A stretch of 64,000 nucleotides of DNA from Epiperipatus broadwayi (Eukaryota > Animalia > Onychophora): contig JAQFVV010000007.1 in the NCBI GenBank assembly GCA_028023455.1, forward strand, positions 5,704,001-5,768,000. Reading direction: 5' to 3'. A model generated the notes under the pieces. That model was given only the letters and a program-made list of their open reading frames with translations, searched no databases and was not told the DNA's origin. The translations under genes were made by a program, and so were the position numbers. Below, one piece after another: positions 16,420 through 61,410 of the stretch. The stretch's first letter is position 1; each line of letters opens with the position of its first letter.

Positions 16420-16500
16420 GACGCTCTGACCTAAGATACAAAGTTCCTCAGTGATGAAAACTGTAAGCTAGAAACTAGCCTGGAAATATTGGTTAGGACA
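16420..16500 (+). repeat. Degenerate hammerhead-family copy
   Basis: ttcctca-gtgatga-aaac(tgtaa)gcta-gaaac-ta-gcc-tggaaatattgg; the core is mutated. Confidence 0.6.
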
Positions 16501-17959
16501 GAACTATGCTCACTGGCATTTATTAATTACTAAAGCTAACAGTAGATGGTGTAAATATGATGAGAAAGAAAGAATTTGCTGAAATACTTATTTTGGAGTT
16601 GATAAGATTATATCTCCTTTTTTGCATTTGTCAGTTAATCAGAGGGTTATACAAATTTAAATTGTTTTTTGTCAAAACCATTGATCTTATGTCTTCAAAT
16701 ATGATATCTTTGACAATACTAGTTTAGATCAAATACTAAGTCATTTTAAAGCACAACCTCAATATATGAAACAAATACATCATATTTGAGTTTGTCAGAG
16801 CCATTGTTATCAATGGAGATAAATTCTCGTTAATGACTACTACATTTATAAGATGCAAATGATTTTAAAATTTTGATGAAGTTAAAAATACAATAAATTA
16901 TGAGTATTAAATCAAAACAATTTTAACTCGGTATATAAAATCAATTCTCTTTTATTGAGTTAATCATACAATATTTAAATAAGGTAAATGTTATACAAAT
17001 ATAATCACTTTAAAAATCTTTATTCTTTTATTGGATGACTAATGTTTTATTGCTTAATTTTTTATGAAATTCTACTTTTAAGGAGTTCTCATTTCATTTA
17101 TTACTTTATATCTCCAAATGTGTTTTTAAGACATTGCTTTTTGACTCTTTTCATCTTTGATATCATTCCGCATTCAATTCATGTTTATCAAAGATAAGTC
17201 TATATAATAGTATATGCCTGAATTTAAAGTCTATTTTGCATTTAGTCTTTGAAATAAAAAAAAGCAATTATAAGCAATATAATTAAAAAATAAAATTGAT
17301 GAACCTAAATAAAGATAACTAACAATGAAAATTAAATTCTTCAGCATCATCCTAAAGTAATAAAATATTTTTCAGAATTTTTTCATGATTTTAATTAATA
17401 ATTACATTAATTTATTTCTACCAAAAAAATTTAAATTAAATATAAAAAATTGTTTTGTTGATCATTCTTTTTGTATTCACTGCCTATTTCTAACATGTTA
17501 TTTAAACCCTTATATACATACATTTATATTGCAATGGTCAGACTAAGTATATTTCAATATTTTACATTTCCCCTATTTATTTATTTATTACATGGGCACC
17601 ACCTGGCTTTAAGCATCAGGACATAAATTAACACGTGTATATTTAAAATAATATTTTATTCAATATAATAATGTGACCATTAAACAACTCCATTTGTAAT
17701 GTCGGTTATTCCTGATGACTGATGATAGAGCATGCAATCTTACATAAACAAAGTATAATAATAGATATACAAAGAATGTATAGAGAAAACTTTCATAAAA
17801 TATATTTTTAAACAGTATGTACTTAGCCACCTTTTGACTATTACAAGTCATAGACATAGCATAAGTATATGTTGTTATTACTAATTTACATAAAATTTAA
17901 ATATGAAAATTAATTTGGAAGAATAAACCATCTCTTAGAGAGAGATACACATGATTCTT

Positions 17960-36764: not shown

Positions 36765-39085
36765 ATTATCTAATGAGGTTTGCATTTAATGTAATGTATT
36801 TTATGTATAATTCTTTTAATGATTAACTTAGGTGTACATATCGGAGCTTTGACATAAGATGTTGTTTTAACCCCCCCCCCTATTTTTCCTTTGTCTTGTG
36901 TGAAAGTAAATTGTAAACATGTGTATTTTAAATAGGTAAAATCTGCTGAACTTGATTTATATAATATTTTCAGACTAATTTCCCTGACACATTTCACCAG
37001 AATGCATATAAAAACATTTTATCTCCTAATATTGAACTTTTTAAATGCATATCATGCTCATATAAAAATAAACTTATCAAATGTACAAAAAAAAATATTA
37101 TTTCTCTCCACCTATTTCTTCAGATCATGAAAATAAAAAAAATTGTTCTCTATTTTTACTCTCTGTTTTCTCTCTTTTTCTTTTTTTAAATAGATGGACC
37201 TAGAATGTTCATTAATTCATTGAATCCTGTATTGACCATTATTGCATCTCTGACATTGTTATTCACCCATGCTTTACATAATTATCACTATTATCAATTT
37301 CTAACCTACAGTTTGGTTTAATTAATACCATTTATGAATTATTTCATCATACTTAGTCTATAAGTATTTATTCAAAAGACGACATAGGCCTTAAACTATG
37401 CACATTATAAATTTAATGAATGACTTTTATTCTGTGCCTTACTAATCTTTTTACGATAATCCTTTAACATTTTCAATTATTCTTTTTCCTTTATTTTTAT
37501 TATAATTAGAGTGGTAATAAGAAACGAGTCTTTTAAGACTAAGATGAGAATCTTTGTGACTTCTTTAATAATGTTGTGTCTGATGCTCAGACAAAGAAAA
37601 AGCAATAAAAGTCTTTAACTTTACAGCCTGTCCTCTGAAAAACTGTGTACAGCTATCTGTATTTGTAGTATATTTTTCTTGAGAAATGTAATAATGAATA
37701 TCCTGTTGATCCTCCCCCATAAACTGGTCTTGATCAAATGTTTAAAGTCCCCATATGGCTGAGAATTATCAAACTAACTCCCACCAATCTTTGGTAGTGG
37801 CGTATAAGTGATTGCTAGCTTATGCCAATTTTTCTTTCTCCCCAGAATACTTAAGACAAACAACATCTCTAGATTCTGCAAATACTCAGATGAGTTGGCT
37901 AAATACTATCCTCTAAACGTCTTTTCCATCATAAATTTTAGTACTGTAAAGTTCTCAATAGTACTTAATTCAAGGTCTACAATTTACACTATTTGAAGAT
38001 TATTAACTAGTGGTCCATAATCAGTTTTATTCTGATCAGGATTTATTGTATCATATTCTGTCTTTAAAATGGTCCCCACACACATTTCTACCTCTTTCTC
38101 TGTTGATAATTAGAATATATTATACTCTAATTTCTCTCATTATAAATTTGTAGCTCCCCAATTTTCCAATTTATATCCTGTATCTCAATATCAATTTGTA
38201 TCTCATCAGTCAACTCCTTGACAAAACTCTTTTGTTCTACTTTAAAGTTATTTAATTCTTTCACAATTTTCTAATCTTTGTTTAATGACACATTCCAGCC
38301 ACTTTTTATATTTATTACTTATTTCTCTTAATTTTTTTTAAATTTTCTTCTCCATTAAATTTCATACTTGATTTATGAGTTTCTTTCATTTCTGACTTTG
38401 ATTCATCTACAGCTTATTTTCTTTTTAAATTCTTCAAATTTTACTTTACACTGTTTGTATTTTGTCACAAATTTGATGAATCTTTATTTGAACATTCTCC
38501 TGTGAGATCATCAAATCCTTTTCTAAATTAACATGATTATCATTAATTTTTAGCAAATTTTAGATTTAATTCATTTTTAAATTCTTCAAATAAATTTATT
38601 AATTGAGTTTCAATACTATTAATTTTATTATTTGTTATAATTAATTGCTCTGACAATTTATAACTACATCCATCCAACTTGCTCTCCAAACTATTACATC
38701 TATTGTCCATTTCAGTTTTATACATATCTAAACTATCTCTAATGATGTTTGATTTAATGAAATGTATTTTATGTATAATTCTTTTAATGATTAACTTAGG
38801 CCTATGTATATCATGCCTTTTGCTTAGGATGTTAAGTTTTTTTCCCCTCCCCTTTCCCTTTGTCTTGCATGGAAGTGAATTGTAAACATGTCTTTTAAAT
38901 GGGTAAAGTTTGCTGAATTTCATTTGCATAATATTTTTAGACTAATTTATCAAACACATTTTACCAGAATGCATATAAAAAACATTCTATCTTCTAATAT
39001 TCAATCTCTTAAATGCATACCATGCTTATATTGAAATAAACTTATCAAATCTACAAAAAAAAATCTGTATTTCCACCTATTTCTA
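36765..39085. repeat. Pair of ~340 bp direct repeats (36765-37110 and 38733-39085) enclosing a minus-strand coiled-coil/gag-like remnant
   Basis: aatgtattttatgtataattcttttaatgattaacttagg...caccagaatgcatataaaaa...ccacctatttct occurs twice. ORF 38543-38929 has a coiled-coil C-terminal half. Confidence 0.75.
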
Positions 39086-54000: not shown

Positions 54001-54393
54001 GTAAATCACCCTGACTTTAATTTTTATATGCCTTATGGATTTTATTTTTTAAGTAACTATATGAAATACCAATTATAATTATCATTTAAGATATTTGCAC
54101 CCATACTTGCTGTAATATAATAAGCTCATTAGTTCATATGTTATATTTGTATTAACTATAACTATTATGTATATATGTATTTGTACATCTATCATTAAAG
54201 TCTTTGCACTTAATGATCACAATTTTCCTGCTTAGTTACTTTTTTAATAACAATTAATTTGATGTTACCGCAGCTTTTAACTCCATACCAGGTATAAAAA
54301 ATTTTCAGCCCAAAACACACTTTACATATTCTTGCTTGGACATTGATATAGCCTGCCAGTTAAATTTGCATACAGAAAGTAGCAGAATGTCAC

Positions 54394-54983
54394 TGTCATA
54401 TCTGACCTTGCCTTCAGAAGTGGACTATTCCTGATTCCTTGCCTGATTGGCTAGCACCCAGTTGCTATCCAAAGGCAGTAAAACCTTCACTGGAGTTCGC
54501 GCACTGAATCCGCGTGTTTCCAGTAAGGTAGGGGATCTGCCTTTAAATAGTCAGCCTTTTGGAGGCAAGGCAGAGAGCAATTACTTCTGTTAACCTGAAC
54601 AACAGAACATGCTCTCCATTGAACCTTCTGCCATCAGCAAAGATATTTATCTAGTCATTATTGAGACATCCACACAGTGAGGCAAGTCCACCTATGGACT
54701 GGAAACTGCTACATCTGAACTAGAGCCGACTCGAGGCTAGCTTACTACATAGCTGGAAGAGTCTTACCAGAACTCACAATGCAGGCTAATCATTAGCTGG
54801 AAGCGAGTTCCTTACTCCGCATGACTATCTCAGCATTGAAGCATATCAACTGTATTTGTTCATTTGTTTAACTAACGTGTGTATATATTTTGTACTAATA
54901 AAGTATACATATTAATTGCTGAATAGTTGTTTTTTGTATCTGTTGGTTTGGAAACGAACCTGCAAGCCTAACCAAATGCAACA
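54394..54983 (+). repeat. 5' LTR
   Basis: Highly similar to 57153-57696; carries an extra ~47 bp (agttccttactcc...tcaact) and an AATAAA near 54897. Confidence 0.95.
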
Positions 54984-55318
54984 GATTTGGTGCAGTCGAC
55001 ACGCCAGTTAAAACAGATTTGGCACAGCCACACAGAAATTTTTCCCTCATGGCTGGGAAAATTATAGAATAAACAGTGCCAGTTACAACAGATTTGGCGC
55101 AGCCACACAGAACTTTTTCCCTCACGGCTAGAAAAAATTATAAAATAAATTGCGCCAGTTATAACAGATTTGGTGCAGTAACAGAAATTTTTCCCTCACA
55201 GCTGAAAAAATTAGTAATAAACTATGCCAGTTTAAACAGATCTGGTGCAGTAACAGAGAAAATTTTCCCTCACGGCTGGAAAATTATATTATAAAATATG
55301 CCAGTTTCAACAGATCTA
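54980..55318 (+). repeat. PBS (tRNA-Ser-like) followed by a tandem array of ~74 bp units, each repeating the LTR end + PBS
   Basis: TGGTGCAGTCG at 54988. Units start (gccagtt) at 55003, 55078, 55154, 55226 and 55300. The first four carry AACAGAT(T/C)TGG(C/T)(G/A)CAG; the fifth is truncated after AACAGATCT. Confidence 0.9.
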
Positions 55319-55627
55319 AACATATGAAATAAATACGTGAGTGTGTATATGTTTTATTATTTTTTGTTTTGGAAAAAATTTATGTTCCTGTCATTTCATT
55401 ACAGTTGTATTTTTTTTTTTTAGAAAAATAATGTAAAACTGTTGAATAAAATTGACTGCAAACATAAAGGCATGTCAATTTGAAGCTTCAACCAATCATG
55501 AGTGCTTTACTCGCAAGACAGCATAAAAGCTTGCTCTATTGGTTTAAAAGCTTAATTGAGTTAGTTACAATAACGTAACTATAAAAACAAGTAGGAGTGG
55601 TTATTCAGCATAAATAAATAAAAAAAG

Positions 55628-56916
55628 ATGGCTAAAGCAATCGGTTCTATGGAATCTTTTGATCCGGCTCAACCTGAAAGCTGTCCAAATTATAAAGAGC
55701 ATTTGATTTTTTATCTACAGCCTAACAATATAAAAAAGCCTGAGATAAATTTAGTTACACTAATGACCACAATAGATCTGCAAACATACGAAATACTCAA
55801 GTCTCAATCTATGGCTGTAACCCCAGCTGAGCTGGATTTTGATCGAGTATTGACAATTCTCACAAAGTATTTTTCTTTTAAATCCTTGACAATAATGCAG
55901 GGGTACCATTTTAATCTCAGCATACAAGAACAGGGTGAAACAGCTAGAGAATTTGCAACACGAATCCATATATTAGCCTTGAAGTGTGATTTCAAAGACT
56001 TCATGAATGAAGCACTTCATGATCGTTTTATTTGTGCATAAACGATCACAATTTGAGGCTGAAAATGTTAATGATTCCAGACCTAGATTTTGAGACAGTG
56101 GTAGCTCAAACAAGACTAGCAGAAACTATAGCTAGTCAAGCTAACCCATTAAAAAGACTTATAAAGTATGAAGTGCAAAAAATTGAGCATAACACTGGGT
56201 CATGCAAACACTCAGTCAGCTCAAATAATTCAGCATCAAATAGTCTAAGGCATTGTTATAAATGCAATGAGCACATGTATACAGAATGTCCATACCACAA
56301 AGCAACATGCATGTTTTTCAAGCATATTGGACATAAAGACAGTAAAGGCACTTATAAAAAACAGAAGCAAGTTGCTTGTATAAACCATATCAGAGATAAC
56401 AAGTCTGGGTTTATACACACTGTCATAATAAATGATACACCAGTTATTATGGAACTTGACACAGGATCAGCAGTGTCTATAGTTTCAAAAAAGACTTGGA
56501 CAATCATTAATAAAAAGAATAAATATAAGCTGCACCCTTGCAGTAAGTCAATATCAGACTACCAAGGGAATAAAATCAAACTGTTGGGTCAAACAACAGG
56601 AAAAATTACTATGCCTAACAAAACTATATACCTACCACTGGTAGTGGCATTAGGTAACCATAATGAGTTAGTAGATTGTGACTGGTTCAGTCACTTAGGG
56701 TTCAAAGTGACCAAAGTGAACCATCTCACAACATTATCAACATTGAAGACTAATGAATCAGAAGTCTTTAACAAAAAGCTGAAACCTGATGTGAAACTTC
56801 AACTAGAAGATAAAAACAAAATAAAATTCCAAATAGAAACAAAAGTACTGTGTCATATGTACTATGGATCCACAAGATGGAGACCAGCAGTAATGATGCA
56901 AATAAAGGGCCTCTAA
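55628..56916 (+). pseudogene. Gag + aspartic protease fused in frame to an integrase C-terminal tail; one frameshift near 56037
   Basis: Mag-type gag (SFDP...Y...Q..GET...F...LALKCDF....EALHDRFIC), degenerate Zn knuckles, protease ELDTGSAVS, then directly KPDV...VLCHMYYGSTRWRPAVMMQIKG, which resembles the IN C-terminal module. Confidence 0.88.
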
Positions 56917-57152
56917 CTGTTGTGCAAACTGAAGATGGTCATCATAATCATCACCATAACAACCAGTGAAAACTCAACCACACATCTGAAGCTATTAAGT
57001 CAGCAGCAGACAACCAGAAACAAGCTCATCAAGCAAAGAAGATGAAGACAGTAACAGCAATCAACTGGAGAAACCAAGAAAGCAGACAAAACATCATCCA
57101 GTGCATTTCAATGATTATGTCCTCCAGGGATAATTTCAGCCAGGGGGAGGTA

Positions 57153-57696
57153 TGTCATATCTGATCCTGCCTTCAGAAGTGGACTATTCCAGATTTCTTG
57201 CCTGATTGGCTAGCACCCAGTTGCTATCCAAAGGAGTAAAACCTTCACTGGCATTCATGCACTGAATCCACATGTTTCCAGTAAGGTAGGGGATCTGCCT
57301 TTAAATAGTCAGCCTTTTGGAGGCAAGGCAGAGAGCAATTACTTCTGTTAACCTGAATGACAGAATGTGCTCTCCATTAAACCTTCTGCCATCAGCAAAG
57401 GTATTTATCTGGTCATTATTGAGATGTCCACACAGTGAGGCAAGTCCACCTATAGACTGGAAACTGCTACATCTGAACTAGAGCCGACTCGAGGCAAGCT
57501 AACTACATAGCTGGAAGAGTCTTACCAGAACTCACAGCACAGTCTAATCATTAGCTGGAAGCGTATTTGTTCATTTGTTTAACTAACATGTGTATATATT
57601 TTGTACTAATAAAGTATACTTATTAATTGCTGAATAGTTGTTCTGTTTGTATCTGTTGGTTTGGAAACAAAGCTGCAAGCCTAACCAAACACAACA
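57153..57696 (+). repeat. 3' LTR
   Basis: Follows the PPT, ends CAACA and is followed by the TSD GTCAC. Confidence 0.95.
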
Positions 57697-57940
57697 GTCA
57701 CAATTTGACAATTCAAGCCTGTGAGAATAGACAGTTTAACAGTCCAAACTTTTAGATGGAACCAGGAGACTGGCACAATTTGTCAATTCAAATTTATGTA
57801 TAGGAATTATCAAATTAACTTAGAATTTCTGAATAAGAAATGCAATCAGTGTTAATAAGATTGTCAAACAAATTTTATATCAAGAATCCTGTGGACTGGC
57901 CATTGTATTTTACATGTATTTAATTATATATATATATATA

Positions 57941-59087
57941 TCATCATCATCATCATTATCAACCATTATCAATCCACTGCAGGATGAAGGTCTCTCCAAG
58001 TTTAATCCATCTTCTCCGATCTTTAGCTTCTCTTCTCCACATCACCCCTGCACACTTTCTTATTTCATCCATCCATCTCACATGTGGTCTCTTTCTGGGT
58101 CTTTTACAATCTCTTAGAATCCAGTTTAAAATTTCAATTGTCCATCTATTATCATCTCTTCTAGCAATATGTCCAGCCTAACTCCACTTCAATCTTTTAA
58201 TTTTTTCAATGATGCCAGTAACACCTGTTTGTTCTCTTACCCATACATTGCATTTTCGATCTCTTCTTGCTACTCCCAACATACACCTCTCCATACTTCT
58301 TTGAGTGGTCTGAAGTCTCTGTATTGCTCTTCTATTGAGTGTCCAAGTCTCAGATCCATAAGTAAGAACTGGTAAAATACATTTGTTAAAAACCTTCCTT
58401 TTCAAACACATAGGCATATTTCCTTTTAGTATCAAGTTATTTCTACCAAAAGCACTCCAACCAAGTTTAATTCTATGATTAATTTCCTCCATTATGTTTC
58501 CATCTGTATTAATAATCTGACCAAGGTATTTGTAACTGTTAACTTCTTCTAATTCATCATAATCAATCTTTATTTTCATATTTTGAGCAAACCGATTAAA
58601 CATTACTTTAGTCTTTTTAACATTTATCTTTAGTCCTACTTTTCTACTCTCATCTGATAACTCCTGCAACATTTCCTGCAGCTCTGAAGCATTATTTGCA
58701 AAAACAACTACATCATCTGCGAAATCTAAATGACTTAAATAATCTCCATTTACTTTCACTCCTTTAGTTTCCCATTTTAATCCACAAAATACTTCTTGCA
58801 GCACTGCTGTAAAAAGTTTTGGAGATATGGAGTCACCTTGTCTTACACCTTTCTCAATGTTGACTTTCCCAGTATCATTATGTAATCTAATTGTTGCTGT
58901 TGCATTTTTATAAATATTCTTTAAAATATGACAATATCCTGGATCTATTCCTTGATGATCCAATGCTTTAATCACTGAAGAAATGTGTTATAGAATCAAA
59001 TGCCTTTTCATAATCTACAAATCCAAAACATAATGACAACTCATATTCATTTGTCCTTTCTATAACTTCTCTCAATACCTGAATATG
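57941..59087 (-). mobile_element. 5'-truncated RTE-clade LINE (RT C-terminal part + 3' UTR) inserted in (TA)n
   Basis: FVDYEKAFDS, GVRQGDSISPKLF, HLDFADDVV, YKYLGQ, LTYGSETW and AGHIARRDDNRW. The tail is (GAT)n on the element strand, with (TA)n tracts on both sides. Two frameshifts (~58980, ~58180). Confidence 0.95.
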
Positions 59088-61149
59088 ATATATATATATA
59101 TATGACACAAATGATGAAACTTTAAAGACAAACACCTGTTTCACTATGCAGAATGTTATAGAAATAGTGAAAAGATCTGTGACAAATTTGTTAAAACAGT
59201 GAAGAAATGAAATAAATATTTTAACCTGCAACTATCTAAACTTATCATCTATTTCTAAAATAGATCCAAAGTAAATGGAAAAAACTTGGACAATTTAATC
59301 CTATGTTGCCAGACTTTGCAAAATCTTGTGTGCTTCTCTGAAGCAGCTTTACTGGAGCAATTTCTATGGAGAATGTGGGATGATTTGGTTAAGACAACAG
59401 CTTCTGGCTATGGGTTATCTATCATATCATTAAGCTAATTAAATGGGAATAACTCATGAAGTAGTGCAAGAATGTGAAATCAAAATCATTAAAATGTTCA
59501 AACAGCAGCAAACTGGACCTGAATGTAAGACAACCTCTATTGCTATAATAACTTAATGCATTTATTCTAAAAATCAAAATGGAAAGAAGAAGAGTGCCAT
59601 TAATTTAGACATAGCTGAGAATGTGTGCAGACCAAGAAACAATTTGAGGCTTCACAAATCCCTCATCATGAAATCCCAAGCAGTGGCTAAATATAAAAAG
59701 ATAAAACCAAAATCATACTTTTCTTTATTTTGCTGTAATATTCTATAAATACAATTTACCCAAACCATTTTGAATACTTTTTAGCAAAACTCTTTATTTT
59801 TTAAGACCATCAAGGTTTATCCAACAAAAGAAAAAAATAAAAGATTATGGTATTACATAATCTGAAACATAGTAAAAACAAAATTTCTACTGACTAGAAA
59901 AACAGAACAATACACTTGATAAATTGCTAGCCAAAAGATTTATGGTCTACAGGAAATACAAATCAAGATTGTCTAAATTAATCATAATAAAAAAAATAAG
60001 GGACAGGTGAGTTAAAAACAAAATTACTAATACCTGCATAAGCATTTATCAAGGTTAGTAATATAAAAAGAGAAAACACTAAGCATATAAAATATAAACT
60101 TGCAATACACTCTTGGATAAATAAATTTAAAATATAAAATCTTAAAACTAAGACTTCAATATATGTAATAATAATAAAAATACATAATAAAGTAATTAAT
60201 GATATTTAAATAATTATACATCTTATTATAGGTGCAGGTTTCTTTTTAAATTAAGCTGAGACATTAACATAGAGATTTAAGCCCTGGTTATAATATGAAA
60301 TGTTCATTTACCTTGAGGCATAATGTCCTATCTGGTTGATTTCTTCCAGGGGGTAATGCATAGTTTATTTCTACTTAGAGTTCATCTCAAAGGTTTTGAT
60401 TTCCATTTATTTATCTGTTCAGAAGTCTGAAGGCAATTGTTGGGATCAGTTCTGGACTAGGCTTTTAGATCATGTTCTTGAAGGCACAATTATGGAGCAC
60501 CAGGGTTCATTTTGGATTGATTTAATACTGCATATTATTATTAAGGTTTTTTACTCACTTATTTTCTGCATCCTGGATGTATGGTTGCTATTTCCAGTAA
60601 CTTAATATATTTACTTCTGTAAGTGAGTAGCTAAGCAGGTCTTCTTTAGCACAGCAAGCAGCAAATATTATTAGAAGTCCACAGAAATCCAACTTCAAAA
60701 ATTCACATTGAGCAAATAGCAAATATAAAAGTTATAACAGCAATCCAAATAAGAATCACTATAAAAATCTAAATAAGAATAAGAAGCAGAATAATAAGCC
60801 AATCAAAAACCTGGGGCTATTTATGTGAATTGTTATCTCCCCCATTAATCTTTAATTAAAAGTTTTGACCAGTGTAAATCACTATCTCACACTTAATATT
60901 AATTTTTAAAAAAATTCAACCAAGGCTCTTATCTATTTTTAAAATTAATTAAATTTAATTAAATGAAAAAATAAGTCTCAGCTTTCAAAAGTAAAATCAC
61001 AGAATTTTAAAATATAAATGAGTATGTGCGTTATCGCACGTACTCTTAAAACACACAAAAACAATAACATACAAAACTTTTAAATAGTTTTTTTAAAAAA
61101 AACTTTATAAATATAAATGTTAGTTTTAATTTTATGATGGTTGTCTTTG

Positions 61150-61410
61150 AAAAAGATAGAGCATTGCACCTAGATCCTATAATTCAAGATTCTTAGATTC
61201 AAGGCTCCTCACTGATGAAAGCCAAAAGCTGGCAACTACTGTGGGAATATTAGATGAGTAGGCACTAGATGGGAAATTTTCTGCATAAATCTTCTTGCAT
61301 CATTGATTACTCTGGTTTGCAATAAATGGTGCTACTGTATTGAGAATTTATTCCATGTGTAAACAGCTTGGGTAAGCACAAAGAATAGTGATCATGTGAT
61401 GTTTAGTGGT
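61150..61410 (+). repeat. Degenerate hammerhead-family copy
   Basis: ctcctca-ctgatga-aagc(caaaa)gctg-gcaac-ta-ctg-tggga, followed by the family 3' region and then gtgatcatgtgatgtttagtggtt. Confidence 0.7.

Follow-up and report, generated by a model that had tools for sequence, protein, structure and literature searches.

Multiplied primer-binding-site-like units in the leader of a non-autonomous LTR retrotransposon family of Epiperipatus broadwayi

The window analysed here, a 64,000-nucleotide stretch of the genome of the onychophoran Epiperipatus broadwayi, contains an old 3.3-kb non-autonomous LTR retrotransposon of a high-copy family, whose leader holds a tandem array of units resembling its own primer-binding site (PBS). 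A survey of the assembly shows the array to be a trait of the family, hypervariable in the number and order of its units, and comparison of the long units shows them to be diverged copies of the same AACA-GATT-PBS segment. The explanation that we favour, with a probability of roughly 0.55, is that a PBS-bearing leader was duplicated long ago and has been reshuffled by out-of-register recombination, and that only the copy adjacent to U5 would prime, the others being masked.

The element and its leader array

The window copy presents the features by which LTR retrotransposons are recognized, namely a TG...CA LTR pair, a target duplication, a tRNA-complementary PBS and a polypurine tract. Its parts are as follows.

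54389-54393, + strand: left target-site duplication GTCAC, recurring as the 5 bp after the 3' LTR
54394-54983, + strand: 5' LTR, 590 bp, TGTCA...CAACA, aligning with 57153-57696
54897: AATAAA, inside the 5' LTR
54980-55011, + strand: short 32-bp unit, S1 form, made up of AACA, GATT, the PBS and a tail ending in GTTAAA
54984-54987, + strand: spacer GATT, 4 nt, between LTR and PBS, recurring ahead of every PBS-like head
54988-55005, + strand: PBS for host tRNA-Ser(AGA/UGA), as compared with host tRNA-Ser 3' ends
55012-55086, + strand: long unit 1, with head TGGCACAGCCACACAG, AU hairpin at about 55036-55063 and tail ACAGTGCCA
55087-55162, + strand: long unit 2, with head TGGCGCAGCCACACAG, AU hairpin at about 55111-55138 and tail ATTGCGCCA
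55163-55234, + strand: long unit 3, with head TGGTGCAGTAACAG; the 71-72-bp type, usually next-to-last in the family
55235-55308, + strand: long unit 4, with spacer GATC; the type in last place in most copies
55309-55317, + strand: truncated stub AACAGATCT, 9 bp; the array stops exactly where a further PBS-like head would begin
55628-56041, + strand: ORF for the gag-like N-terminal part, with no match in Pfam
56032-56916, + strand: ORF with a zinc-knuckle-like CxxC motif and an aspartic protease remnant (LDTGSA)
57142-57150, + strand: polypurine tract AGGGGGAGG, immediately 5' of the 3' LTR and kept in other copies
57153-57696, + strand: 3' LTR, ending ...CAACA, with zero array units attached
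57697-57701, + strand: right target-site duplication GTCAC, matching the left 5 bp

The boundary between the LTR and the first unit falls at 54983/54984. The K2P distance between the 5' LTR and the 3' LTR, the latter with a 47-bp deletion, is 0.064, and the insertion of the window copy is therefore old. The 2.2-kb interior has gag-like ORFs, a zinc-knuckle-like motif and a protease remnant alone; the ORF at 56032-56916 gives weak Pfam protease matches and weak homologues with protease domains, and the clusters of proteins that it resembles are arthropod retroelement proteases carrying RVP and DUF1758/1759 domains; Ty3/gypsy and BEL/Pao are the candidate superfamilies. No reverse transcriptase, RNase H or integrase was found between the LTRs of this copy, so that the attribution of the leader to a non-autonomous LTR element, made in the earlier note, is borne out by an LTR pair, a target-site duplication and a PBS in an element devoid of reverse transcriptase and integrase. 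Just downstream of the element, at 58178-59231 on the minus strand, lie ORFs of 265 and 87 amino acids, the larger with a reverse-transcriptase domain (RVT_1, E 3e-19); these belong to a fragment of a different retroelement, one that does not seem related to the array-bearing family.

The tandem array that had been described behind the LTR was recovered, by Tandem Repeats Finder and by core matches, as a short unit, four units of 72-76 bp (n=4 in the window copy) and a stub. Tandem Repeats Finder reports a single array at 55003-55315 with a period of 74, 4.2 copies and 83% matches, while the 15-nt core ACAGATTTGGCGCAG occurs, with at most two mismatches, at 54981, 55013, 55088, 55164 and 55236, that is five times against 0.01 expected from shuffles. 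The short unit contains TGGTGCAGTCGACACGCC. Each long unit runs in the order AACA-GAT(T/C), PBS-like head, AU-rich inverted repeat (about AATTTTTCC / GGAAAAATT with a 9-nt loop between), A-rich stretch and a tail of the form ACTGCGCCA-GTTAT, and the AU-rich hairpin is present, as had been stated, in every long unit of the window copy. The proposal that the unit consists of an LTR end, spacer, PBS-like head and hairpin holds, with the correction that the LTR end is represented by a shared stretch of only about 4-5 nt (AACA), or loosely of up to about 12 nt. Periodicity of the array running into U5 was considered and rejected, since comparison of a unit profile with 29 LTR ends confined the homology to the last 12-19 nt. 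The multiplied units may also be candidates for ends recognisable by integrase, the basis for this being the same 4-5 shared nucleotides.

The array across the family and its relation to host tRNA-Ser

A search of the 5.6-Gb assembly with positions 54900-55400 returned 1,707 first-look candidates, and the 40 that were scored yielded 46 matches. The array is present in every one of the 30 copies fetched, with 3-9 units each, in numbers whose statistics are biased because these copies were picked by similarity to the window copy. The order of the units differs in most of the 30, and the two 3'-most unit types hold fixed positions in most copies. At all 12 loci that were extended to 10 kb the same 3.3-kb non-autonomous element was found, and LTR-LTR distances across copies range from 0.064 to 0.126. 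The tree of flanking sequences is star-like with copies lacking the short unit dispersed over it, and the array types do not appear, from these sequences, to be inherited along the tree. An expanded array is seen in L016 (C6207:4638662-4642076), with nine units that include three short PBS units, two of them in tandem mid-array. Copies L008 (C10385) and L009 (C128), which differ by about 2%, have identical array order; either the pair stems from a segmental duplication or C10385, only 6.7 kb long, is an unplaced duplicate contig.

tRNA-Ser primes some insect gypsy-like elements. Host tRNA-Ser genes were located with a pattern built on the 5' half, which is conserved among eukaryotic tRNA-Ser, and were assigned by ARAGORN to tRNA-Ser(AGA) and tRNA-Ser(UGA). 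Their genomic 3' ends, taken from L031-L034 and L038, read ...TCCTGTCGACTGCG, and the reverse complement of this end with CCA added is TGGCGCAGTCGACAGGAT, followed by TCGAACC. The PBS of the window copy matches tRNA-Ser at 14 of 18 nt, comprising 13 of the first 14 and nt 16, and the single mismatch within the first 14 is a C-to-T change at a CpG. Because the PBS matches the 3' ends of the host's own tRNA-Ser genes, tRNA-Ser is the primer; the earlier note had named this tRNA correctly, although the insect complement that it gave differs slightly from that of the host. At four further loci of the same genome (L036, L037, L039 and L040) tRNA-Ser breaks off after its first 35-70 nt and unrelated AT-rich sequence takes its place; two of them (L039 and L040), 23 kb apart on one contig, are identical over the stretch displayed. 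The four loci may be tRNA-Ser pseudogenes that have been truncated, or may belong to a repeat headed by tRNA-Ser.

Short units occur in two forms. In the 14-nt form the first 14 nt are exact in well-kept copies, while in the 18-nt form 16-18 nt are matched and the match ends by nt 18 (L016, L006, L013, L015, L025). A PBS is limited to 18 nt because synthesis of plus-strand strong-stop DNA stops at the modified A58 of its primer. In the genome-wide lists the CpG at PBS position 4/5 reads TG at most sites of the 14-nt form and CA at most of those of the 18-nt form, which looks like inherited sub-lineage states and not independent decay; this split argues that the two forms may be partly separate lineages, not only fresh tRNA copies.

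The heads of the long units are whole copies of the 18-mer that carry an indel close to nt 12 together with two to three substitutions, in types that end in ...CCGCACAG, ...TCGCAGTG, ...TTGGACAG and ...T--AACAG. Because of this indel the unbroken match to the tRNA is limited to 8-11 nt, and about 14-15 pairs become possible if one bulge is allowed. At head position 4/5, counted over 83 long units from 29 copies, C/G is found 55/56 times, T 27 times and A 27 times, so that changes are almost exclusively CpG transitions and the ascription of the head variants to CpG decay is upheld. A likeness by eye of the whole long unit to a tRNA copy was also considered; it ends at the 18-nt head and the 9-nt tail, and the idea was dropped.

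Leader folding and the choice of priming site

The long-unit tail ACTGCGCCA has the same sense as the last 9 nt of mature tRNA-Ser, CCA included, and is also the inverted complement of the head of the following unit. This mimic and the next head are predicted to pair over 10 bp in a hairpin whose loop is 11 nt long, and about half of the tails have A for G at their fourth position, which introduces one mismatch. The loop contains the 8-nt palindrome GTTATAAC, and in the tail of the next-to-last unit this is replaced by GTTTAAAC, a double change through which the palindrome is kept. In the window copy such hairpins are found at three places.

55147-55182, + strand: best-kept mimic/PBS-like hairpin of the window, predicted at -12.3 kcal/mol, z -4.1
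55071-55106, + strand: further mimic/PBS-like hairpin
55219-55254, + strand: further mimic/PBS-like hairpin

In an intact relative (L028:1569-1604) the mimic hairpin folds at -16.5 kcal/mol with a z of -5.9. The AU hairpin gives -6 to -8.6 kcal/mol and a z of about -1.8, all of these energies being predictions on decayed DNA copies. The mimic/head hairpin is thus predicted to be the stronger of the two, and the hairpin that the earlier note saw in each module, although present, is weak. Opening a head over its first 10 nt is predicted to cost 4.8 kcal/mol for copies adjacent to U5 (n=27) versus 8.0 kcal/mol for internal ones (n=111), a contrast with a Mann-Whitney p of 6e-6 among sites that are non-independent. 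A tentative possibility is that the array has become a self-masking set of spare primer sites, in which the mimic hairpins would shut the next PBS copy, only the U5-adjacent copy would bind tRNA-Ser and recombination would keep swapping that copy; if true, the array would amount to a built-in backup or repair of the PBS and perhaps to a shield against silencing by tRNA fragments.

It is more doubtful that the multiplied units are selected cis-signals whose hairpins or kissing palindromes raise packaging or dimerisation into helper particles. The element is non-autonomous yet has reached high copy number, folding of the leader as a whole is more stable than in shuffles (z -2.4 for the window copy and -4.2 for L028), the double change keeps the loop palindrome, and the two 3'-most unit types are positionally fixed in most copies, all of which would suit such a role. 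The AU hairpin is weak, though, an 8-nt palindrome is not rare in AT-rich sequence and its retention represents a single compensating event, and in the 5' part of the array the units differ freely in number and arrangement, pointing to loose constraint. Across the 83 units the two helices pair in 91% of cells compared with about 45% when the partners are slid, a difference that cannot discriminate because the sequences are too alike; covariation of the helices does not exceed that of the shuffles, 72 of 500 of which reach the observed value for these highly alike sequences. RNAalifold on the 83 units gave almost no consensus structure, the helices then being named by hand, and no Rfam match was found for the array. 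Selection on the RNA structure of the array is accordingly unproven.

Which of the sites primes can be read from the 3' LTRs. The standard model has the 3' LTR of each new copy derived from minus-strand strong-stop DNA, so that priming at an internal unit would append the units upstream of it to the U5 of the 3' LTR. In the extended loci 10 of 10 3' LTRs end at AACA and are then followed by unrelated flank, none of the 10 complete copies having array units appended, and the 5-bp target duplication is cleanly readable in at least four copies besides that of the window. The suggestion that downstream units serve as alternative priming sites on the same RNA, for which LTRs extended by such priming had been named as the sign to look for, is not supported by this small sample of normal 3' LTRs.

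A census of junctions was made with genome-wide patterns at up to one mismatch, and its counts are lower bounds from patterns of unequal permissiveness. Next to the LTR end and GATT there are at least 53 junctions with the perfect 18-nt PBS, at least 38 with the 14-nt form and at least 101 with a long-unit head, while after a unit tail, and hence internally, there are none with the perfect 18-nt PBS and at least five with the 14-nt form. The 14-nt form makes up 43 of 96 short units, and the probability that all five internal sites should be of this form is about 0.016, a figure weakened by two of the five sharing one locus. The long-head variant TCAGACAAAAA, which has a shared non-CpG change, was found at least 13 times adjacent to the LTR versus 0-2 times after a tail, and therefore a lineage with a long-type head in first place was propagated. 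If long heads next to U5 do prime, the standard model expects progeny in which the tRNA-copied 18-mer is fused to the hairpin, a configuration seen in at most one copy, the pattern used being blind to forms that are one base out of register. Dead-end deletion could also have produced the copies that lack the short unit.

Taken with this census, it seems unlikely that tRNA-Ser starts at several downstream units of the same RNA. In favour of such alternative priming, TGGCGCAG is kept in every head and a head with one bulge can still form about 14-15 pairs with tRNA-Ser, long heads are probably usable as a PBS as they stand at so many U5 junctions, and engineered vectors with two PBSs reportedly start at both; against it are the 3' LTRs free of appended units, the confinement of the perfect 18-nt copy to LTR-adjacent positions, and the predicted locking of internal heads in the 10-bp hairpin.

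Proposed origin and known systems

In the reading that we favour, of an old leader duplication with priming from the U5-adjacent copy, the array would have arisen by duplication of a PBS-bearing leader segment, and AACAGAT(T/C)T flanks the array on both sides, which points to a short direct repeat as the substrate. Recombination between units out of register, at their shared 16-nt core AACAGATTTGGCGCAG, would then have reshuffled the array, most likely by template switching during reverse transcription, a process that is frequent at direct repeats in retroviruses generally. The copy abutting U5 alone would prime, and internal copies would be silent because the tRNA-end mimic holds them in a stable hairpin; a long unit moved next to U5 by reshuffling would become the PBS. 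With masking and priming restricted to U5, the extra units would therefore be spare, masked copies of the PBS and not parallel sites. Changes in the array may arise by post-insertion slippage as well as in reverse transcription; the array of the L008/L009 pair is unchanged over its divergence of about 2%.

Host defences that read the PBS include 3' tRNA fragments, which repress LTR elements through it (PMC12853362), and Puf68/pre-tRNA (PMC13537249). That the array is a decoy or sponge for such defences (3' tRNA fragments or pre-tRNA-guided heterochromatin factors), or alternatively a multiplied target for them, is very improbable: each unit does offer a seed-like match of 8-11 nt, and the CpG decay of the copies implies that they were methylated, but complementarity beyond nt 8-11 is broken by indels, and a sponge would be hindered by the predicted pairing of the internal heads. 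That the array is the product of replication slippage after insertion, private to the window copy, is scarcely credible and is refuted by the family survey, for although tandem repeats can expand in this way and the units of the window are about 83% alike, 30 of 30 copies at different loci share its unit types and the same two terminal units, a result that also answers the concern of the earlier note that the array might be unique to this copy.

Comparison with known leaders brings out what is unusual here. Like the canonical PBS of LTR elements and retroviruses, that of the family lies a few nucleotides past the 5' LTR and in its full form is complementary over 18 nt to a host tRNA's 3' end with CCA; unlike the canonical one, it belongs to a tandem array of paralogous copies, and at about half of the junctions of the family the LTR-adjacent copy is a diverged one with 8-11 nt unbroken. 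Retroviral leaders likewise possess stem-loops around the PBS, with U5-IR/PBS stems and a dimerisation hairpin with a palindromic loop, while the stem-loops of the array are tandemly repeated and predicted, with covariation no better than in shuffles.

Tandem repeats of variable number are found in the leaders of insect errantiviruses, where Tirant has 2-6 repeats of 102 bp and ZAM 2.3 repeats of 307 bp (PMC5408687), and are common in plant LTR elements (bioRxiv 10.1101/2021.07.15.452536). As in the present family, the Tirant and ZAM repeats lie just 3' of the 5' LTR and vary in number within the family, but they are regarded as regulatory or chromatin-related with no PBS mentioned (PMC5408687). 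In the array described here, by contrast, LTR end, spacer and PBS recur in each unit, and published leader repeats that each contain a PBS were not found in a limited search of the literature.

Two further systems bear on multiple or self-complementary priming sites. The engineered two-PBS retroviral vectors that Voronin and Pathak are said to have described in J Virol in 2004, as listed among the references of PMC3902901, and which reportedly initiate at both sites, share with this leader the presence of more than one tRNA-complementary site and provide a framework for the effects of internal priming on LTRs; they are artificial with both sites perfect, whereas the array is natural, with 4-9 sites of which a single one is good and the remainder are predicted to be masked. 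In Tf1/Tf2 self-priming the 5' end of the transcript is complementary to the PBS and is cleaved to provide the primer, so that, as here, RNA of the element itself in the primer sense pairs with the PBS. The mimic of the present family differs in lying 11-13 nt upstream of each internal head, from where extension could copy the loop only. Self-priming of the Tf1 type was considered for this family and excluded, an anti-PBS being absent throughout the LTR even at 2-5 mismatches.

LTR elements are taught as having a single PBS. The family offers a natural set of more than 1,000 candidate decayed copies with a multiplied PBS, in which the U5-adjacent copy varies by insertion. As the 3' LTR end of each insertion records the site at which priming occurred, the choice of PBS, the minimum tRNA complementarity and the effects of RNA structure become testable from genome sequence alone. 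The leader is in addition a candidate natural case of a PBS masked by a mimic of a tRNA end, and should the extra units prove inert, it would still be a clear case of recombination in reverse transcription building and reshuffling leader repeats.

Other repeats are present elsewhere in the window. A dispersed 89-bp sequence occurs three times (288-376, 16430-16518 and 61191-61279; 61-82% alike) and is a short interspersed repeat. Between 17588 and 24545 lie several pairs of direct repeats, each 80-190 bp long, 76-91% alike and spaced by 3.5-5.3 kb; they point to a tandem or segmental duplication that has since diverged, or to two adjacent related elements. A direct repeat of about 175 bp at 36922-37096 and 38889-39064 (85-87% alike, spacing 1,967 bp) could represent the LTRs of a small element or a local duplication.
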